From Trichoplax adhaerens (taxonomy: Eukaryota > Animalia > Placozoa): a stretch of 13,043 nucleotides of DNA. Shown here one piece after another: positions 1 through 10,966 of this stretch. The position numbers and the translations under genes are program-made. Position 1 is the stretch's first letter, and every line of letters begins with the position of its first letter. The stretch is taken from assembly GCF_000150275.1 (NCBI RefSeq), contig NW_002060975.1, positions 33,442-46,484 of the forward strand, given 5' to 3'. The notes under the pieces were generated by a model. That model searched no databases. It saw only the letters and a program-made list of their open reading frames with translations, and was not told the origin of the DNA.

Positions 1-1
1 G

Positions 2-415
2 AATTTCCGGTTTGTGAAGTGAAACGCTTTAGCCATATGTTTACTCACATTTAGTACGTATATTTAACTCGTACAATGTAATTAACCATAAGCAGATTTA
101 TTTCTTCATTTATCCCTATTTATTTCCTAAAGAGATGATGTAAGTCAACGAGAATATAGGTACCTATCCATGTGCTTACAACTTCACAAAATGATACTAA
201 TCCTATTCGCTGAAACTGATGGACTATACAGTATAAACTCCTAATGATTCTTTATAAACCGTTAAAAGTAAATTGTCTGTAAGCTATTTAAGACCAAAGA
301 AATAAAATATCAGCAAGAACAAGTAATTTTTATCTCTGTGTTTCAGATAGTGAGTTCGCAATCTAGTTTATTTACGCTAACTTATTAGCTCCATTTTTGG
401 ATGTCTTTACGCTTG
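2..415 (+). repeat. Direct repeat copy A (~415 bp, probably extends left of the window)
   Basis: Manual alignment to 10207-10621 gives about 15 substitutions and 1 indel (~96% identity). Confidence 0.97.
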
Positions 416-971
416 TTTTAAGTGCACTTTTGGCATGAAAATAAGTAGAGCGCTATTCTATCTAGGATAGATGATTTACGATGATTGTAGATACGTAGTG
501 AAGAAATAGTAGGCTTTAAAACAAAAATCTTGCGATACGTACGTTCAATTTTATAAATTTAATACTGTATCAAAATAAAATAAATCACAAGCTCAGGTTA
601 AAATCTGGAACAGGGATTATCGAGTAATATTAAGTTAAGAATGGAATTAAAGGCGTCAAGCTTATGATAAACACGTGGCATATAAAAATAAAATACATGG
701 GAGGAAATATAGAGAATTTGAGATGAACACTTTTTAAATTAGTTTTGAATGATAATGTCTATCCGTACCAGTTCACTCCTGCTTGATTTATTGGGATAGA
801 CTGGATACAACGTTTAATGAGTATTTCACAGTTCTTGAATCTTGATGCTCAAGCTGACAGTTTAATGGAGCTGATGAAGAAAAAGTAATTAACGAATTTG
901 TCTGTCAAAAAGGCGGAAAGAGTGAGATAGGAAGGGAAAGTAGAAAACGCATTTATTCGACTGTCATGCGA

Positions 972-1357: not shown

Positions 1358-2230
1358 TTATGACTTAGTTCGAACAGTGTACATAATAGTAATAATACGA
1401 GATTCAGTACTATCATTTAACTGATCGCAGGTAACATTTTGCAAGTCTAGATAAACTGCACTCGCCTACGACGGTAATAGAGCAGCTGTGTTGTCAATTC
1501 TGCCGAACCCTTCGTTGGCTATCTCATATTTCATAAGTCCATGGAGTACTTTCATATAGTTCCATTTTGATATAGGTATTTTTGCGACAGCATAGCTTGT
1601 ACCGCATGAGCAGTTGTATACATATTCTCGAATTGATAAGTTGTTTTGGATTGCTTTAAGAGTAAAGCTTGGAAGCCTTTAGATATAGCACTATTACTAC
1701 TGTTATCGGCACAATTTAGGGCTAAAATTGTCATCGCTGTTGTATCTAAATCAACCCAAGTTCCATCTGATGATTGCATTACTTGTAATTTATAGACTAG
1801 ATTCGATTTATATTTGCTGTTTGTCAATCAAATATGGAGTACATCACTTCTACCCATATAAAGTTATTTTCCTGGGTAATATTGTATAGGAGTACCTGTT
1901 GATTCTTAACAGGCCAATCGATCGACCTAACACAGCGATTTGCTTGAACTATTATAATTCTTGATGTTTAAACTAGCAAGAAAACTGTGAAATGGAATAC
2001 AAAAAATAATATTAAGGCGAGAATCTTTGTCTTAAAGGCAGATGAGTAGAAAAGAGTGAAAGGCGAAAAATAACTGTGTCTTCTCGTCTGTTATATCATC
2101 ATTAATATACGGTACCTATTGACCTGGTACTGTTTGAATAATTAATTTATAGTTACCACGCTCATATAAAAGTAAAGAATTTTAATTGGTTAATTGAATT
2201 TCCATCATTACTATGCAAACAAAATTCTAT
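1358..2230 (-). pseudogene. Cobalamin (vitamin B12)-binding protein pseudogene, intrinsic factor/transcobalamin/haptocorrin family: alpha domain plus start of beta domain
   Basis: DLDTTAMTILALNC resembles the family signature [SN]VDT[GA]AMAxLA[LF]TC. FENMYTTAHAVQAM resembles GNxYSTxLAxQAL. After a 1-nt frameshift at ~1565-1568 the frame reads WNYMKVLHGLMKYEIANEGFGRIDNTAALLPS*ASAVYLDLQNVTC...IITIMYTV, collinear with IF-type WNC...LPSLKGKTYLDVPQVTC...ITVIYTI. An upstream exon remnant PGQ*VPYIN (2130-2101) resembles GQLALY. Acceptor tttcacag at 1985. Multiple in-frame stops. Confidence 0.85.
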
Positions 2231-3545: not shown

Positions 3546-5029
3546 TTATTCCTTTTTCATTGGATTTGCTAAGCAGTAATCCTGATCACTCCTGATGATG
3601 AGTTGAGAGTGTTGAAGATTCCATTGCATGTCCCATATTTTGAAGTGACGGAATGGTAGAGTAATTTGTAGCTGTAGTGTTTGGGGGTTATAAATATTCA
3701 AACTAGATCCATTTTGATATAGGATTAACTGCTTGTCCGACCATAGATTTTCATGGTTGAAGAATTGTGTGAAAGGATGGAAGTATTTGATATTGTCTTT
3801 GTATCTTTTCATGCGTAAATATCCATCTTGGTAAATATCCATCTAAAGTCAAACAAGTGATGGTATACGGTTTACAAAGCATCTTGATCAGTTCAAGGCT
3901 TTCAATACAGGAACAGTATATATAGTAGGTCATCATCATGAATCATACGACTCGTAATAAATCGTTTGATTGCAATTCAGCTTGTTTAACAACTTGTTAT
4001 TCCAGTCACAGAGTATATTCTTATAGGCCAATCTTTGTCAGCAAGGCACTTAGTGTATCCAAGGCTGTTATCAAACTAAATATCTCACTCTTACTCCTGT
4101 ACCTTGTCTACTTACAAACTAGCGACCCGTATATTGTTTTAGACTTTTAGTCAGTTATAGTTTAGTAATTCCTTGTGTTTTTCACCGTCTTCTTGGAAAG
4201 TTGACCATCTGCAATTAGTTTAAATTGACATCATCAATTCTACTTTAATACCTTGAATAGTATCTATCAAAGTCATTGTAATTAAGGGTAAAGCCATCCA
4301 AAATATTATACAGGATGCACCTTGATCGATAATGGTGATGATAATCCTATTTCTGCAATGTAGATTACATCCAGTAACATATATTACCTGTCTGTTTACC
4401 TCTGTCATAATGATGCTGGTTGGCCTCTTCATCTTCCGTACCGACAGCGATGGCTGATTGCAAGTTACGATGCAAGAAACATCGAGGATAATTACACACG
4501 ATAGAGTGAAGTCGTTGTCAATGCCTCTTTTCCATAATCCTATATTTTCTCAATATAAGAAATTGAAAGAATTAAGTGCCACTAATGAGAGAATGAAATC
4601 AAATTGCGCAGGGTAGTGATATCAACACCTGCACTTGATCTATATCGATCTATATCGATCTATATCGTCTACATTCTGCATCAACAGAGCAATCACTGGG
4701 ATGCTATTAGTGTAAGCCAATCGACGTGTAGTTAACAGTGCTTAGCGATATTTTGGGGATGATTAGTGGATAAATTGCCAATCAATATTGCAGCCTTACT
4801 TCTTTTAGTTATAGCAATACTCAAAACAGATTGTGGTAATGTCTACGGTTCATCTTCCATTTGAATTATATTAGTACTGTCATAACTTACTTACCTTATC
4901 CATGATATTGTAACAGAAAATGTTTATCCCAATAATCTTCAAGCAGCTATCAATTCCTAACAGGAATCATGGATGATTGTCCTATTTCTGCCCCATCGAT
5001 AGACTCTAGTATAAGATTCAATTTGATCA
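3546..5029 (-). pseudogene. Decayed gene, possibly F-box plus beta-propeller/WD-like repeat
   Basis: ORFs 3751-3939 and 3546-3842 join into one ~125-aa frame when a 16-bp tandem duplication (3815-3844) is removed. The C-terminal part (SSLNIYNPQTLQLQITLPF..IWDMQWN..SQLII) looks like a propeller blade. Near the gap, fragments YTRVYRW, EDYWDKHF and CNIDWQFI resemble an F-box tail. The family assignment is by eye only. Confidence 0.45.
4637..4667. repeat. (gatctatatc)x3 tandem repeat
   Basis: Seen directly. Confidence 0.95.
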
Positions 5030-5079
5030 NNNNNNNNNNNNNNNNNNNNNNNNNNNNNNNNNNNNNNNNNNNNNNNNNN
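5030..5079. other. Assembly gap (50 N)
   Basis: Run of N. Confidence 1.
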
Positions 5080-5199
5080 GGATGATCATTAATTGGATAG
5101 TATTTTACGGCAGTTTTCCGTGATTAAACTACCACAGTAACAGATACAATTAATATTACTCATTTTCAGTAGGCATCATCGGTATACAATTAAAATGTC

Positions 5200-5219
5200 T
5201 TACGAAGACAACAGCATAT
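5200..5219 (-). CDS. Predicted terminal coding exon (DMLLSS*)
   Basis: Follows a 69-nt intron ending catttctaag; TAA at 5202-5200. It could instead be a 16-nt microexon using the gtaaga donor. Confidence 0.35.
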
Positions 5220-5288
5220 CTTAGAAATGTAAGACTAAGTAATTTATATACGTCCTACTCTTTCACTGAATATGTATATTTTGTATAC

Positions 5289-5381
5289 CTGTATTGACAG
5301 GCTCTATCTGCTTTGGTGTGATATCGTCAGGTAACGTCGATTTTACTTGTTTGTTAGAAGATGAAAATGATATCCGATTTT
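5289..5381 (-). CDS. Predicted exon 3 (93 nt, phase 1-1, Ser/Thr/Pro-rich linker)
   Basis: aaactag| ... ACAG|gtatac. Open in the phase left by exon 2: ENRISFSSSNKQVKSTLPDDITPKQIEPVNT. Confidence 0.6.
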
Positions 5382-5574
5382 CTAGTTTTAAAAGTAATCA
5401 AAAATTTAAAACATGTGATTATTATATGCGATACAATTAACGTCAAACTGTTTTAAATTCGAGCAACGGGACGCTAATATACAGTAGTTATAGCAAATTG
5501 CATAATAGATTGATAAATTAAGAATTGATATATACTTGATAACTGCAACAGTTACTATTAAGAAAAGAAATACA

Positions 5575-5593
5575 TACTGTACTGTACTGTACT
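5575..5593. repeat. (tactg)n microsatellite
   Basis: tactgtactgtactgtact seen directly. Confidence 0.9.
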
Positions 5594-6182
5594 AGAGTTG
5601 ACTGTAATCCGCAACAGCACAACCGGTATGAATGATCATCAGTACTGGAATGTATACTGGCTTCAATTAGCATGGACTCCCAGAAAAAACACCTTGGACT
5701 GCACCAGGGACTACTGCATGAAAAGGAAAGAAAGAGGGACGCAAAGCAGCCGTCAGTGCAAAATAATGTGCAGGCCTATCATTTTTCCCGTCATTCTACA
5801 GTACCGATGAAACCGTTGAATAACATTCATCATCTAAAGCAGAGCTTAGTGCTGTAACAGGCACAACTTAATTTCGAAAATATTAGTCAGTTCAGAATCG
5901 ACTGTCTGCATACTAAAGTATGACCAAAATAGGCCAAATGTCTGTCCGTCCAAAGGAGTGTCCAGTCCAGGTATTTTTTTCTAGCAGCCCATAACTAAGG
6001 GCAATTGGGCATTCGTAACATCCCTTACGATACTAATTGCAACAGACTAAAATCACAGATGGTAATTACTGAACAAAACTATCGCTGGCATTACTGAGAT
6101 CATGGTAGCATACCAGTAGAATCATTATTTTAATTCTGATTACATATAAAATTGAATGCATCAATTTTACCCTTCCTTTTAC

Positions 6183-7045
6183 CTTGAGAGGTCGCTTCAG
6201 CTATTGGCTTTGAGCTTTGCTTTTCATCAGATTCTTTGTTTTGATTTTTCAATTCGTCCAATTTCTGTTCTATCCTTTCAGTTGCACCTTCTATCCGTTC
6301 AGTTCGGTTATCTGTCCTTTCAGTTGTACCGTCGATTCTGTCAGTTCTGTCATCAATCCTTTCAGTTGTATCTTCTATCCGTTCAGTTCGGCCATCTATC
6401 CTTTCAGTTCTGTCGTCAATCCTTTCAGTTGTACCTTCTATCCGTTCAGTTCTGTTATCTATACTTTCTAAAAGACGTTTCACTTTGTCACATAGTTCAG
6501 CAAAACAATCCGATAGTGAATTATTTTTTTCCGCAATTTCTTTTATCAATTTCGTTAATGCCTTTATCTTGTCAATGCTGTTATTAAAATCGGAGGCACT
6601 ATTGAAAGTTTTTAAAATTTTTTCAATGTTAGCTTGGACTGGTTTCATAACATCGTCATTTAAATTTTGTACGTCTCTAATTATTTTATCAAACTTGGTT
6701 ACTATGAATGACTTTCCGTCTCCTGAGACCTACTTTAATATACTTTGAGCCTTGTGTTTAAGATCTTCAACCGTTTCAACTTTGCACAATTGGGTCTGAT
6801 ATTCGGAGTTTTTATCAATAGCAGATGACTTCAAAACCTCGTAAGAGTTTTCAATATCGCTTGAGTCCTCAAGCAATGGTCTTTGGCGGAAGCCATATTT
6901 ACAAATGTCACTTTTTCCCTGCAATTTGTAGTACTTTACTGTGTTTACCTCGACAATCCTAATGCCAATATTTTTAAATAACTTGGAGGCTCTGATCTTT
7001 TTCTTTCCCGGTAAAACTTTTAATTCACTTCCAGTACCTTTTGAC
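6183..7045 (-). CDS. Exon 2 of the same gene (KYGFR motif region, coiled coil, heptad repeats); contains one in-frame TAG at 6730-6732
   Basis: ORFs 6730-7125 and 6130-6648 share a frame and are separated only by one TAG plus 27 open codons. The exon ends at donor CAAG|gtaaaa (6182, phase 1). Confidence 0.78.
6274..6462 (-). repeat. Coding minisatellite: 9 x 21 bp encoding heptads of consensus I-[DE]-[DGN]-[RT]-T-E-R
   Basis: Units read IDNRTER IEGTTER IDDRTER IDGRTER IEDTTER IDDRTDR IDGTTER TDNRTER IEGATER. Confidence 0.97.
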
Positions 7046-8286
7046 CTACGATACGAATATTGCATATGTTCATTTTGTGTGCAGCAAATTCTTAATCCAT
7101 TATAGAAATGTGAAGAGAACGACATTCTAGACCACTAAGTCTATTTTTATAGCGAATGCTACCCAAAATGGCGCAAAGTACTCTACAAAACTACGTATAT
7201 TTATGCAAGATGTTATATTCACAAATGTACATTAAATTGCATAATCATAAGTTACAAGACAGCTGATAGCAGCTGATAGGTTATAAAAGCTTGCGCATAT
7301 TGATAATATAATATAATAAATTATCCATCACCATTAAAAGACCGTGGATGGAAAATGCTTTACTCATATTTGCATGTAAGTACACAAGGGACCTTGCAAA
7401 TATTCAATCAGCTATATTCAGGTTACATTTAGCGATTAATATATTTTAATTCTAAATAAAAAGTATTTCTAATTTTCATGAATTAGGTTACCAATCATTT
7501 CTTATAGGATTACCAATGCAATTCAACTAATAAAAACGTATCTTGCAGTATTAGGCCCAGCTAATTTTAAAACCAATAGTGCTGGAACTTAGGGTAAATG
7601 GTTTAATTAATGATGCACCACTGTACGAGTTTATATCCGAATTTTATACCACTTGAAAATTAAGATATTCCATCAAAGCAATACCGTAAGTAAACTGATA
7701 TATGCCCCTGAGTGATAGAAAAATTGTTATGTAAACCGGAAATTTGGACAAGAGGGTAAAAACAGATTATCCTTGCTATAGTGCAATGTCGTACACCTTT
7801 CAATTGGCATAAAGTTTGGGATATATGTAGACTCTAACAGATGTCCATCAGTGTTTAAGCTATTTTCAGTAAATATCAAAGTTGCCGGTAGTAATACTGG
7901 CTAAGTTTAATGATCCTTTACAATGCCATCATGGCAACTATGCTCTTGAACGATGTGTTAAGCGACGAGGGCTACAAAAGGGTTAAGCAAGCATTCACAG
8001 CGGGACTACAGTACGCTTGACATAGTGACGATAAGAATTCCATTGCATTTTTTTATAGTAGCTAATGTGAATCAAAAACATTCCCTTACTAGAATACTCA
8101 CTACTAAAATAATGTTAGAAAAGTTCATATTGAGAGTAATAAGCAAAGATAATCCAAGTCAAACATGTACGAAAATTTAAAATAGATATCGTGTAGAGTT
8201 TCTACGATATGAATTTAGAAATTCAAACCGCCTTGTTGCGTAAATAATTAGTGAAACACTTGGAAAGAAAATCTGTTCATACATAC

Positions 8287-8933
8287 AGGCAGGAATCTAT
8301 GTTTTTCTTGCTAAAAACAGGGCAGGCAATACTTTTGATAGCAAACTTAGCTAGATCAGCGGGCGCTAACTTGTCTGACGATTTATTTTCTTCCTTTTTC
8401 ACGAAGGCTTTAATAATAGCATCAGTCATGTCATCAGCCAATTTTTTAATATAATGATAATCGCTTTTATCAGAGATATAAGATATTTGTTGTTCAAACA
8501 TGAACAAGATTTCCAAAGCCATCATTGAGATTGCCAATGTGGTATTATCATTATTGGGCGCTATTTCGTCAATAAGTTTTTTCAATTTCTTCCTCTTGCA
8601 TTTTTGGAGCCACCATACAATACCATCGCCCAACAACTGCATTATGCTGTTTGCAGTAGCAGCACATCTAATAACGGTTGGTGTTGCATTTGTGGCTGCC
8701 GTTGCTACATCTGAAGCCGCGCTCCCCGCGATATCAGTAACAAATTTCACAACTTTTCCTGTTTTGCCTAGTGGTGCACTCTCTTCGTTTTCTACAACTT
8801 TGGAGGCAATTTCCAGTTTTGCAATGAATTTGAGTATAAAGTGCTTCAGAAATTGTTTGAATTTCAAACCATCGCTATTGTTAGGATCATCCAATTCTTT
8901 TGGCCAATTGCTTATAGTTTGTTGGCTTGCCAT
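8287..8933 (-). CDS. Exon 1 of an uncharacterised helical-domain/coiled-coil protein
   Basis: 218-codon ORF in AT-rich DNA. ATG context gaaATGG with an upstream in-frame TAA. Donor CT|gtatgt at 8286 (phase 2) matches acceptor tatcgtag|G at 7046, giving CTG (Leu) and the join ...IDSCL-SKGTG... Confidence 0.8.
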
Positions 8934-10206: not shown

Positions 10207-10621
10207 AATTTCCGGTTTGTGAAGTGAAACGCTTTAGCCATATGTTTACTCACATTTAGTACGTATATTTAACTCGTACAATGTAATTAACCATTAGCAG
10301 ATTTATTTCTTCATTTATCCCCATTTATTTCCTAAAGAGATAATGTAAGTCAACGAGAATATAGGTACCTATCCATGTGCTTACAACTTCACAAAATGAT
10401 ACTAATCATATTCGCTGAAACTGACGGACTATACAGTCTAAGCTCCTAATGATTCTTTATAAGCCGTTAAAAGTAAATTGTCTGTAAGCTATTTAAAGAT
10501 CAAAGAGATAAAATATCAGCAAGAACAAGTAATTTTTATCTCTGTGTTTCAGATAGTGAGTTTGCAATTTAATTTATTTACGCTAACACATTAGCTCCAT
10601 TTTTGGATGTCTTTACGCTTG
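10207..10621 (+). repeat. Direct repeat copy B, truncated by the N gap
   Basis: Matches 2-415, from aatttccggtttgtgaagtgaaac to ggatgtctttacgcttg, then runs into Ns. Confidence 0.97.
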
Positions 10622-10966
10622 NNNNNNNNNNNNNNNNNNNNNNNNNNNNNNNNNNNNNNNNNNNNNNNNNNNNNNNNNNNNNNNNNNNNNNNNNNNNNNN
10701 NNNNNNNNNNNNNNNNNNNNNNNNNNNNNNNNNNNNNNNNNNNNNNNNNNNNNNNNNNNNNNNNNNNNNNNNNNNNNNNNNNNNNNNNNNNNNNNNNNNN
10801 NNNNNNNNNNNNNNNNNNNNNNNNNNNNNNNNNNNNNNNNNNNNNNNNNNNNNNNNNNNNNNNNNNNNNNNNNNNNNNNNNNNNNNNNNNNNNNNNNNNN
10901 NNNNNNNNNNNNNNNNNNNNNNNNNNNNNNNNNNNNNNNNNNNNNNNNNNNNNNNNNNNNNNNNNN
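10622..10966. other. Assembly gap (345 N)
   Basis: Run of N. ORFs spanning it are artefacts. Confidence 1.

Follow-up and report, generated by a model that had tools for sequence, protein, structure and literature searches.

A 13,043-nucleotide stretch of Trichoplax adhaerens DNA (contig NW_002060975.1, here C1382, positions 33442-46484; hereafter the window) carries a genuine multi-exon gene, which starts at position 8933 and is read on the minus strand. Comparison of gene models and alignments gives good support to the view that its product is a head module of the kind borne by STAND/Apaf-1-type proteins, hitherto undescribed, which here stands alone and is probably joined to a CARD. The module is tripartite and about 480 residues long, and is composed of a helical domain of about 200 residues (X), a linker of about 100 residues that contains the motif K-x-G-[YF]-R, and a stalk of charged heptad repeats. 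X is a new domain within a known kind of system. To the fuller reading, in which this stand-alone head serves as a signalling subunit of an expanded placozoan apoptosome-like network, we assign a probability of about 0.5.

A conserved tripartite module

The extent of the module was taken from two alignments, A2 with 36 sequences and A4 with placozoan, metagenome and bacterial members. In A2, X begins with a conserved first helix. The helical hairpin that comes next is variable, and after a basic helix follows the core, which is strongly conserved and has the consensus A-C-D-I-C-R-M-Y-E-Q-Q-I ... I-K-x-F-A-x-D. Residues A139, E147, Q149, K164 and A166 are invariant or near-invariant (alignments A1 and A2). 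The roughly 100 residues that follow X are conserved in A4, where the Arg of x-G-[YF]-R is invariant and a Leu and a Gly are near-invariant. Residues 139-169 of the window gene fit the core pattern [DE]-I-x-[RKQ]-x-[YF]-E-x-Q ... [KR]-x-[FL]-A-x-D, and its downstream part fits L...G...YY...x-G-[YF]-R, after which comes a helical stalk. The T-E-R-I-D-D-R heptads of the stalk are encoded by a 21-nt tandem repeat of 9.5 copies at 6269-6468.

An initial annotation of the window, made from its letters, had pointed to a Gly/Ala/Thr stretch, a basic cluster, FEQQI...KKLADD, CKYGFR and heptads, all of which were located in the sequence. It had also named a series of FE-Q, KLA-D and K-x-G-[YF]-R motifs as occurring in other proteins. 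Because A2 and A4 conserve the core and the linker motif, this series is a real conserved signature.

No match of X to Pfam, NCBIfam or PADLOC was obtained. Profile searches with X and the linker against PDB sequences returned noise, and a Pfam scan of the stalk open reading frame (ORF) returned coiled-coil noise only. X is not described in the papers searched, which deal with immunity in placozoans, with death-like adaptors of bacteria and with modular proteins of Wolbachia and Rickettsia. The T. adhaerens assembly (105.6 Mb, 1414 contigs) contains about 18 X-domain loci, with close copies 81% and 74% identical to the window copy and distant ones at 25-39%. Searching 1.84 billion representative proteins with a profile of the placozoan copies gave 32 matches at E<=1e-3. 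The named members among them come from Trichoplax, together with one Rickettsiella protein from a metagenome-assembled genome (MAG) and the hypothetical protein P0031; the remainder stem from metagenome or read-archive contigs. A metagenome scan with A1 found nothing, and ESM Atlas feature searches (scores 0.78-0.88) led to unrelated families that serve as leads only.

Partner domains in placozoans

In the Trichoplax proteins P0007, P0009, P0011 and P0014, X, linker and stalk precede an NB-ARC domain and APAF1_C. P0011 carries the name Apaf-1 in Trichoplax sp. H2. Since the nucleotide-binding oligomerisation domain (NOD) of P0007 is of Apaf-1 type (E 2e-25 against Apaf-1 structures) and the module lies ahead of it, the module occupies the slot that holds the CARD in Apaf-1. 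Among the proteins of Trichoplax sp. H2 listed by Kamm et al. 2019 (PMC6321704) are Apaf-1-class NB-ARC/WD40 proteins for which no effector domain is entered. Apaf-1 paralogues are unusually expanded in placozoans; to those listed without a recognised effector domain, and to a set of Death- or CARD-ended partners, a common head of about 480 residues can now be assigned.

A Death domain follows X and stalk in P0038 (42.7 bits), the exons of which are present in this genome, and in P0010, where the score lies at the cut-off. Downstream of the 81% paralogue on contig C1332 (model P0004, TRIADDRAFT_62502), at a distance of 2.4 kb and in the same orientation, there are NB-ARC exons, to judge from which P0004 is probably a truncated model of an X-stalk-NB-ARC gene. 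In this region (L035, C1332:4886-8778, minus strand), NB-ARC-like exons past P0004 are 28-40% identical to residues 469-871 of P0007. No NB-ARC was found in the window by tblastn or by Pfam; the NTPase is present in P0007, P0009, P0011 and P0014 and downstream of the C1332 copy.

The C-terminal continuation of the window gene can be read from model P0006 (TRIADDRAFT_62776) of the Joint Genome Institute (JGI) on contig C1007. After the donor at 5289, P0006 has four more exons, which encode a CARD (40.7 bits, cut-off 23.9), and every junction is GT..AG. The window itself does not contain these CARD exons; C1007 runs on exactly where the window has its gap at 5030-5079. Most likely, judging by this overlap, the window gene continues through its Ser/Thr-rich exon into a CARD cassette at its C-terminus, which falls within the gap of the scaffold. 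Paralogues of the cassette, 78-87% identical, are found elsewhere in the genome. At C1372:7251-10337 (L033, plus strand) the cassette follows a 707-residue Roc-COR ORF (COR-A, 63.7 bits), and at the copies on C1397 and C1414, within the same identity range, it is preceded by long ORFs. A CARD cassette that has been shuffled as a C-terminal unit is thus common to placozoan ROCO-CARD genes and the X gene, and its C-terminal use elsewhere makes a C-terminal CARD on the window gene plausible, though it is seen in one model only. On C1007 (L023) the 31-codon Ser/Thr exon occurs three times, at 3266-3174, 2265-2173 and 171-79 (100%, 61% and 97%), flanking the CARD exons.

Thus, in one genome, X is found on NB-ARC proteins and on separate Death- or CARD-ended proteins, the CARD case by gene model. 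The immune or cell-death setting that had been suggested for the window gene fits these Apaf-1-type NODs and Death and CARD partners.

Exon structure of the window gene

Exons were searched one by one, and the database models P0002, P0004 and P0006 were used for full-length comparison. The initial annotation had proposed a hidden gene spliced from three ORFs and two small exons. All three ORFs were found on the minus strand (8933-8277, 7125-6730 and 6729/6648-6130), and most of the junctions hold. The junction 8287/7045 has the form GTATGT...AG in phase 2, and the homologous junction is used in the JGI models of two paralogues, P0004 and P0002. P0006 makes use of both the junction 6183/5381 and the donor that follows 5289, and exon 5289-5381 is a 100% match to its residues 296-326. 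The proposal did not account for a TAG within its second exon, and it missed the CARD exons. Its last acceptor, at 5219, is absent from P0006, the sole gene model of this copy, and has no homology support. The gene had further been called unannotated. This is true of exon 1, for which no database protein is 100% identical and which has counterparts in the paralogue model P0004 and in the Trichoplax sp. H2 protein P0001. It is not true of exons 2 and 3, which are annotated on the duplicate contig C1007. The coordinates are collected in Table 1.

Table 1. Features of the X-linker-stalk gene and assembly gaps, in window coordinates
Feature	Position	Strand	Description
Exon 1	8287..8933	-	ATG at 8933-8931; 215 codons + 2 nt; all-helical X domain; GTATGT donor at 8286
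Hairpin and basic helix	8598..8753	-	codons 61-112; Gly/Ala/Ser/Thr-rich; hypervariable; low model confidence (pLDDT)
X core signature helices	8427..8519	-	A-L-E-I-L-F-M-F-E-Q-Q-I ... K-K-L-A-D-D; aligns with bacterial core by hhalign
Intron 1	7046..8286	-	1241 nt, GT..AG; 96.5% identical, ungapped, to intron of the C1332 copy
Exon 2a	6734..7045	-	linker, L...G...YY...C-K-Y-G-F-R; CKYGFR at 6903-6886
In-frame segment, 57 nt	6677..6733	-	opens with TAG at 6732-6730; premature stop or GT..AG mini-intron
Exon 2b	6183..6676	-	helical stalk, T-E-R-I-D-D-R heptads; ends in GTAAAA donor
Small Ser/Thr-rich exon	5289..5381	-	31 codons, phase 1 at both ends; AG acceptor, GTATAC donor
Last exon of the initial annotation	5200..5219	-	six codons, then stop; unsupported
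Scaffold gap, 50 N	5030-5079		N run; C1007 2962-5295 corresponds to window 5080-7417 at 99.1%
Second N gap	10622-10966		

An in-frame TAG and rapid divergence

The second and third ORFs lie in one frame and are split solely by the TAG, within what had been taken as a single exon from 7045 to 6183. At this position the paralogues carry Glu, and the 57-nt segment is read there as 19 codons that lack the GT and the AG. In P0006 the segment is spliced out as an in-frame GT..AG intron. Among the paralogues compared, the flanking GT and AG were found in this copy only. Expression of this copy beyond the TAG is presumed.

The window copy was compared with the C1332 copy. Exon 1 is 90.5% identical, compared to 96.5% for the 1241 ungapped bases of intron 1 (Fisher p 2e-7), and has a ratio of non-synonymous to synonymous divergence (dN/dS) of 1.44. 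In the hairpin (codons 61-112), nucleotide divergence reaches 19%, as opposed to 3.5% for intron 1 (Fisher p 9e-12), and dN/dS is 3.17, with 27 non-synonymous and 3 synonymous changes. Codons 1-60 are identical in both copies. Exons that outpace introns in divergence indicate diversifying selection or mosaic gene conversion and not simple decay. The high dN/dS of the hairpin marks a probable conflict interface.

These data bear on the alternative that the window holds a defunct or decaying duplicate, in which the TAG truncates the product and the X-stalk-CARD model is an artefact, a pseudogene joined to a stray CARD cassette in a misassembled array. The TAG is present on the window scaffold and on C1007 alike, overall dN/dS against the C1332 copy is about 1-1.4, and gaps, fragments and duplicated small exons are abundant at the locus. 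Further pseudogene fragments exist in the X family, and the nearest CARD paralogues are parts of Roc-COR genes. However, over about 520 codons there is a single disruption and no frameshift, the exons have diverged about three times as much as the introns, unlike neutral decay, and codons 1-60 are the same as in the C1332 paralogue. All seven P0006 junctions are canonical and phase-compatible, and the GT and AG around the TAG segment are unique to this copy. It seems somewhat unlikely, on balance, that this copy is inactive, and the same holds for an artefactual X-stalk-CARD model.

Bacterial relatives of X

In a scan of species-representative genomes, X was found in Rickettsiella, Candidatus Aquirickettsiella and one unclassified Pseudomonadota MAG. 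In the GTDB order of Rickettsiella, 24 of the 31 genomes carry X, with one to seven copies each. An even sample of 401 Gammaproteobacteria gave two genomes of the same order and one marginal match only. The bacterial X-headed NB-ARC/NACHT proteins range from 900 to 2600 residues. One class, with ORFs of 2115-2417+ residues, has the order X, R-Y-G-Y-R-R linker, NB-ARC and DUF7779, and a second class of about 910-1006 residues has the order X-NACHT. The initial annotation had placed the motif series in intracellular, Legionellales-type bacteria ahead of NTPases, and this is borne out by the STAND NTPases (NB-ARC, NACHT) of Rickettsiella and Aquirickettsiella.

Homology of placozoan and bacterial X is supported in both directions by profile comparison. 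Alignment of the placozoan with the bacterial profile by hhalign gave 97.3% (E 2.4e-11, 150 columns), and the bacterial profile A3, searched against the Trichoplax genome, had window exon 1 as its best match (E 3.9e-9). The bacterial NODs are not Apaf-1-like, so X is joined to different NODs in the two groups. Transfer of X and NOD together as a whole module was considered and rejected, as the placozoan NOD is Apaf-1-like and the bacterial NOD is of another NB-ARC type or of NACHT type.

In a tree of 48 X domains, one split (SH-aLRT 99, approximate likelihood ratio test) separates 14 bacterial and three metagenome sequences from 14 Trichoplax and 17 metagenome sequences, which are interleaved by subfamily. 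An exchange between animals and endosymbionts had been suggested as a possibility. The split between bacterial and eukaryote-type members is deep and well supported, and the tree gives evidence neither of a recent transfer nor of its direction. It shows X to be an old shared domain. X subfamilies from the organism behind the ENA assembly ERZ23499115 interleave with those of Trichoplax. In that assembly (L027), a TPR-like frame at 1-528 (plus strand) lies just upstream of the X gene P0018; the gene density of this contig is low.

In the Rickettsiella protein P0034, a Ulp1-like protease precedes X. Its gene lies among Ku, LigD and photolyase genes and is followed, 55 nt on, by an ORF that opens at an NB-ARC P-loop. 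In two bacterial genomes (L025 8794/8849; L055 ~3930-4038) the Ulp1-X frame stops just ahead of the NB-ARC P-loop and a second frame begins there, which may reflect split genes, frameshifts or pseudogenes. In a third (L038) the frame is continuous from X into NB-ARC.

Predicted structure and the membrane question

A first AlphaFold2 model of X from 10 sequences was unusable, with a mean predicted local distance difference test (pLDDT) of 44.6. With alignment A2, an AlphaFold model with eight helices was obtained (pLDDT 72.7, predicted template modelling score 0.71), in which the hairpin at residues 58-111 has low pLDDT and is poorly defined. The best match of this model in a Foldseek search of the PDB had an E of 0.6 and was not significant. 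VIA-align wide gave a best Z of 6.9, to T4 antiholin RI over 68 residues, also not significant, and neither the ESM Atlas fold search (TM score <=0.35) nor BFVD (best E 0.47) gave a significant match. The four-helix bundle (4HB) of MLKL, HeLo, HELL and the RPW8-type coiled coil (CC) were absent from the top 50 fold matches, although a weak match does not prove a different fold. Pfam gave no HeLo, MLKL or RPW8 match on exon 1 at E<=1; RPW8 scored 15.9 bits in the coiled-coil ORF only, far under its cut-off. The fold check suggested in the initial annotation thus returned no MLKL, HeLo, Bcl-2, colicin or other family.

The same annotation had proposed an oligomeric membrane-inserting or executioner-like module. 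The maximum 19-residue Kyte-Doolittle mean (KD19) of the window hairpin is 0.99, below the transmembrane level, and most placozoan members lie between 0.3 and 1.6. Transmembrane-level values of 1.75 and 1.88 are reached in the bacterial-type proteins P0031 and P0032, which have Gly-zipper-like hairpins. The hairpin is missing in the relatives P0025-P0027. Because the hairpin is mostly non-hydrophobic and is missing in three relatives, a membrane-inserting hairpin is not a conserved trait of the family. For X as a whole, a hydrophobicity below the transmembrane level and the lack of a fold match neither support nor exclude a membrane-inserting executioner role.

Possible functions of the stand-alone head

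In the preferred reading, a signalling subunit in the placozoan network, the stalk would oligomerise, the CARD would dock on CARD-bearing Apaf-1 paralogues or CARD-caspases, and X would act by induced proximity. By analogy with ASC (PYD-CARD), X may be a homotypic connector to X-headed Apaf-1 paralogues that links them to the CARD-caspases; we hold this more specific role tentatively. That X is itself the terminal effector and is recruited via its death-fold partner seems rather unlikely. Both models are compatible with the finding of X on NOD proteins as well as on proteins that end in a CARD or a Death domain. In favour of the effector model are that the module is large, that it stands N-terminally in bacteria and that some bacterial members have hydrophobic hairpins, whereas the order Ulp1-X, the non-hydrophobic and dispensable hairpin and the absence of a pore-former fold match favour an adaptor.

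Several points count against the stand-alone signalling subunit. The junctions are predictions from sequence and gene models. With the TAG present on both contigs, the product of this copy may end at the close of the linker, or the copy may be a pseudogene. Its connection to the CARD comes from one JGI model on a 5.3-kb contig, at a place where the main scaffold is gapped, and no CARD was found near any other X paralogue in the genome. In the bacterial genomes sampled, no stand-alone X was found, X being fused to an NTPase throughout, so that an adaptor role is not favoured there. Finally, the X-X interaction is an inference, and the hypervariability of the hairpin would be unusual in a homotypic interface.

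A competing idea, which follows the initial annotation, is that X is a membrane-inserting or pore-forming executioner like the MLKL 4HB, HeLo or plant CC domains, where the NOD or CARD would cluster X and the hairpin and basic helix would attack the membrane. The position of X at the N-terminus of STAND NTPases, most bacterial members of which have no other effector domain, is in line with this, as are the Gly-zipper-like hairpins of P0031 and P0032 and the conserved basic helix directly after the hairpin. A large conserved head with a stalk is also more device-like than a small adaptor. On the other hand, the low hydrophobicity of the hairpin in the window copy and in most placozoan members, its hypervariability and its loss in P0025-P0027 do not suggest a conserved membrane-attacking element, and no pore-former or executioner domain was matched in the fold libraries searched or by Pfam. 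In some bacterial members X is preceded by a Ulp1-like protease, so that the effector role need not fall to X. We therefore regard an executioner as unlikely. A broader proposal would make the module an unrecognised cell-death executioner head of early-animal Apaf-1-type proteins and of NLR-like proteins from Legionellales-type endosymbionts, a counterpart of plant CC, fungal HeLo and MLKL 4HB that crossed between animals and intracellular bacteria and whose hypervariable hairpin is a surface contested by pathogens; this we consider quite unlikely. Alternatively, X could be an all-alpha enzyme or a ligand-binding effector, with an active site to which the core helix would contribute its acidic residue, a Glu and a Gln, and the linker its Arg. 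The invariance of A139, E147, Q149 and the linker Arg from bacteria to placozoans exceeds the needs of helix packing, but the same conservation also fits an interface, and no sequence or fold similarity to enzyme families was observed. An enzymatic or ligand-binding role is thus very improbable.

Relation to known systems

The module resembles the heads of Apaf-1/CED-4 apoptosome proteins and animal NLRs in that the paralogues carry it in the N-terminal slot before an Apaf-1-type NB-ARC and APAF1_C, within the placozoan expansion reported by Kamm et al. 2019 (PMC6321704). It differs in being about 480 residues long and without a known fold instead of a death-fold six-helix bundle, and the window gene has no NOD. 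Like the adaptors ASC (PYD-CARD) and RAIDD (CARD-DD), the window gene and P0038 would join a domain of NOD sensors, X, to a CARD or a Death domain, respectively. In contrast to these adaptors, X is not a death fold, the two ends lie apart on either side of a long heptad stalk, the CARD link comes from a gene model and the interaction is inferred. With the MLKL 4HB and brace, HeLo/HELL and CC/RPW8, X shares a helical N-terminal position on STAND proteins, an additional stand-alone form, a putatively oligomerising stalk and a basic patch by the hairpin, but no sequence or fold similarity, and the window hairpin is non-hydrophobic and unconserved in the family. Compared to alpha-pore-forming toxins (colicin, Bcl-2, diphtheria-T), the window hairpin is below transmembrane-level hydrophobicity, which only P0031 and P0032 reach.

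Among bacterial systems, the closest likeness is to modular proteins with NB-ARC/NACHT and CE-clan (Ulp1) domains from the eukaryotic association module of Wolbachia phage WO, from Rickettsia and from Rickettsiella (PMC5062602, PMC6133264). Rickettsiella and Aquirickettsiella encode giant proteins of the order Ulp1(optional)-X-NB-ARC-DUF7779 or X-NACHT, with several copies per genome of 1.3-2.1 Mb; their NODs, however, are not Apaf-1-like. In the passages of these two papers that were searched, Trichoplax is not listed among such proteins and no X-like domain is described. Effector-associated domains (EADs; Kaur et al., PMC8195603) likewise occur on the N-terminus of NTPases and on separate proteins of one genome, as X does in Trichoplax. 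EADs are only about 100 residues long, though, and in the bacteria searched X occurred solely as a fusion with the NTPase. Neither Trichoplax nor Rickettsiella is mentioned in PMC8195603.

The presence of the same module on NB-ARC/NACHT proteins in most Rickettsiella-lineage genomes offers a handle on the role of giant NLR-like proteins in arthropod endosymbionts and on cross-kingdom movement of STAND N-terminal domains. In placozoans, the module gives access to non-CARD apoptosome-like signalling in an early-branching animal.

Genomic context of the window

The window is nuclear DNA with introns, about 32% GC and two N gaps. Segments 6263-7874 (92.6% identity to the neighbouring copy), 3984-5029 (99.9% to C1382:25257-26301) and 2-415 (96% to 10207-10621) are repeated, and the gaps lie within this array. 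Because of the near-identical repeats (96% and 99.9%) and the two gaps, the region is a tandem segmental array of about 10 kb that is not resolved in the assembly. Contigs C1007 and C1332 would seem to be haplotype versions of the two tandem copies. The view that the locus is duplicating is borne out by the gapped tandem array, and the excess of exon over intron divergence shows that it is diversifying as well.

Below the gap at 5030-5079, no NB-ARC exons were detected in the window by tblastn or Pfam; this stretch carries instead an exon of an unrelated gene at 1552-1827 (minus strand), which encodes part of a cobalamin-binding protein of transcobalamin or intrinsic-factor type (PF01122, 25.1 bits, cut-off 25). 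Between both tandem copies, at C1382:28838-29253 (plus strand in L024, 5397-5812), there is a fragment on the opposite strand that is related to P0007, a distant paralogue, in its linker and stalk parts.

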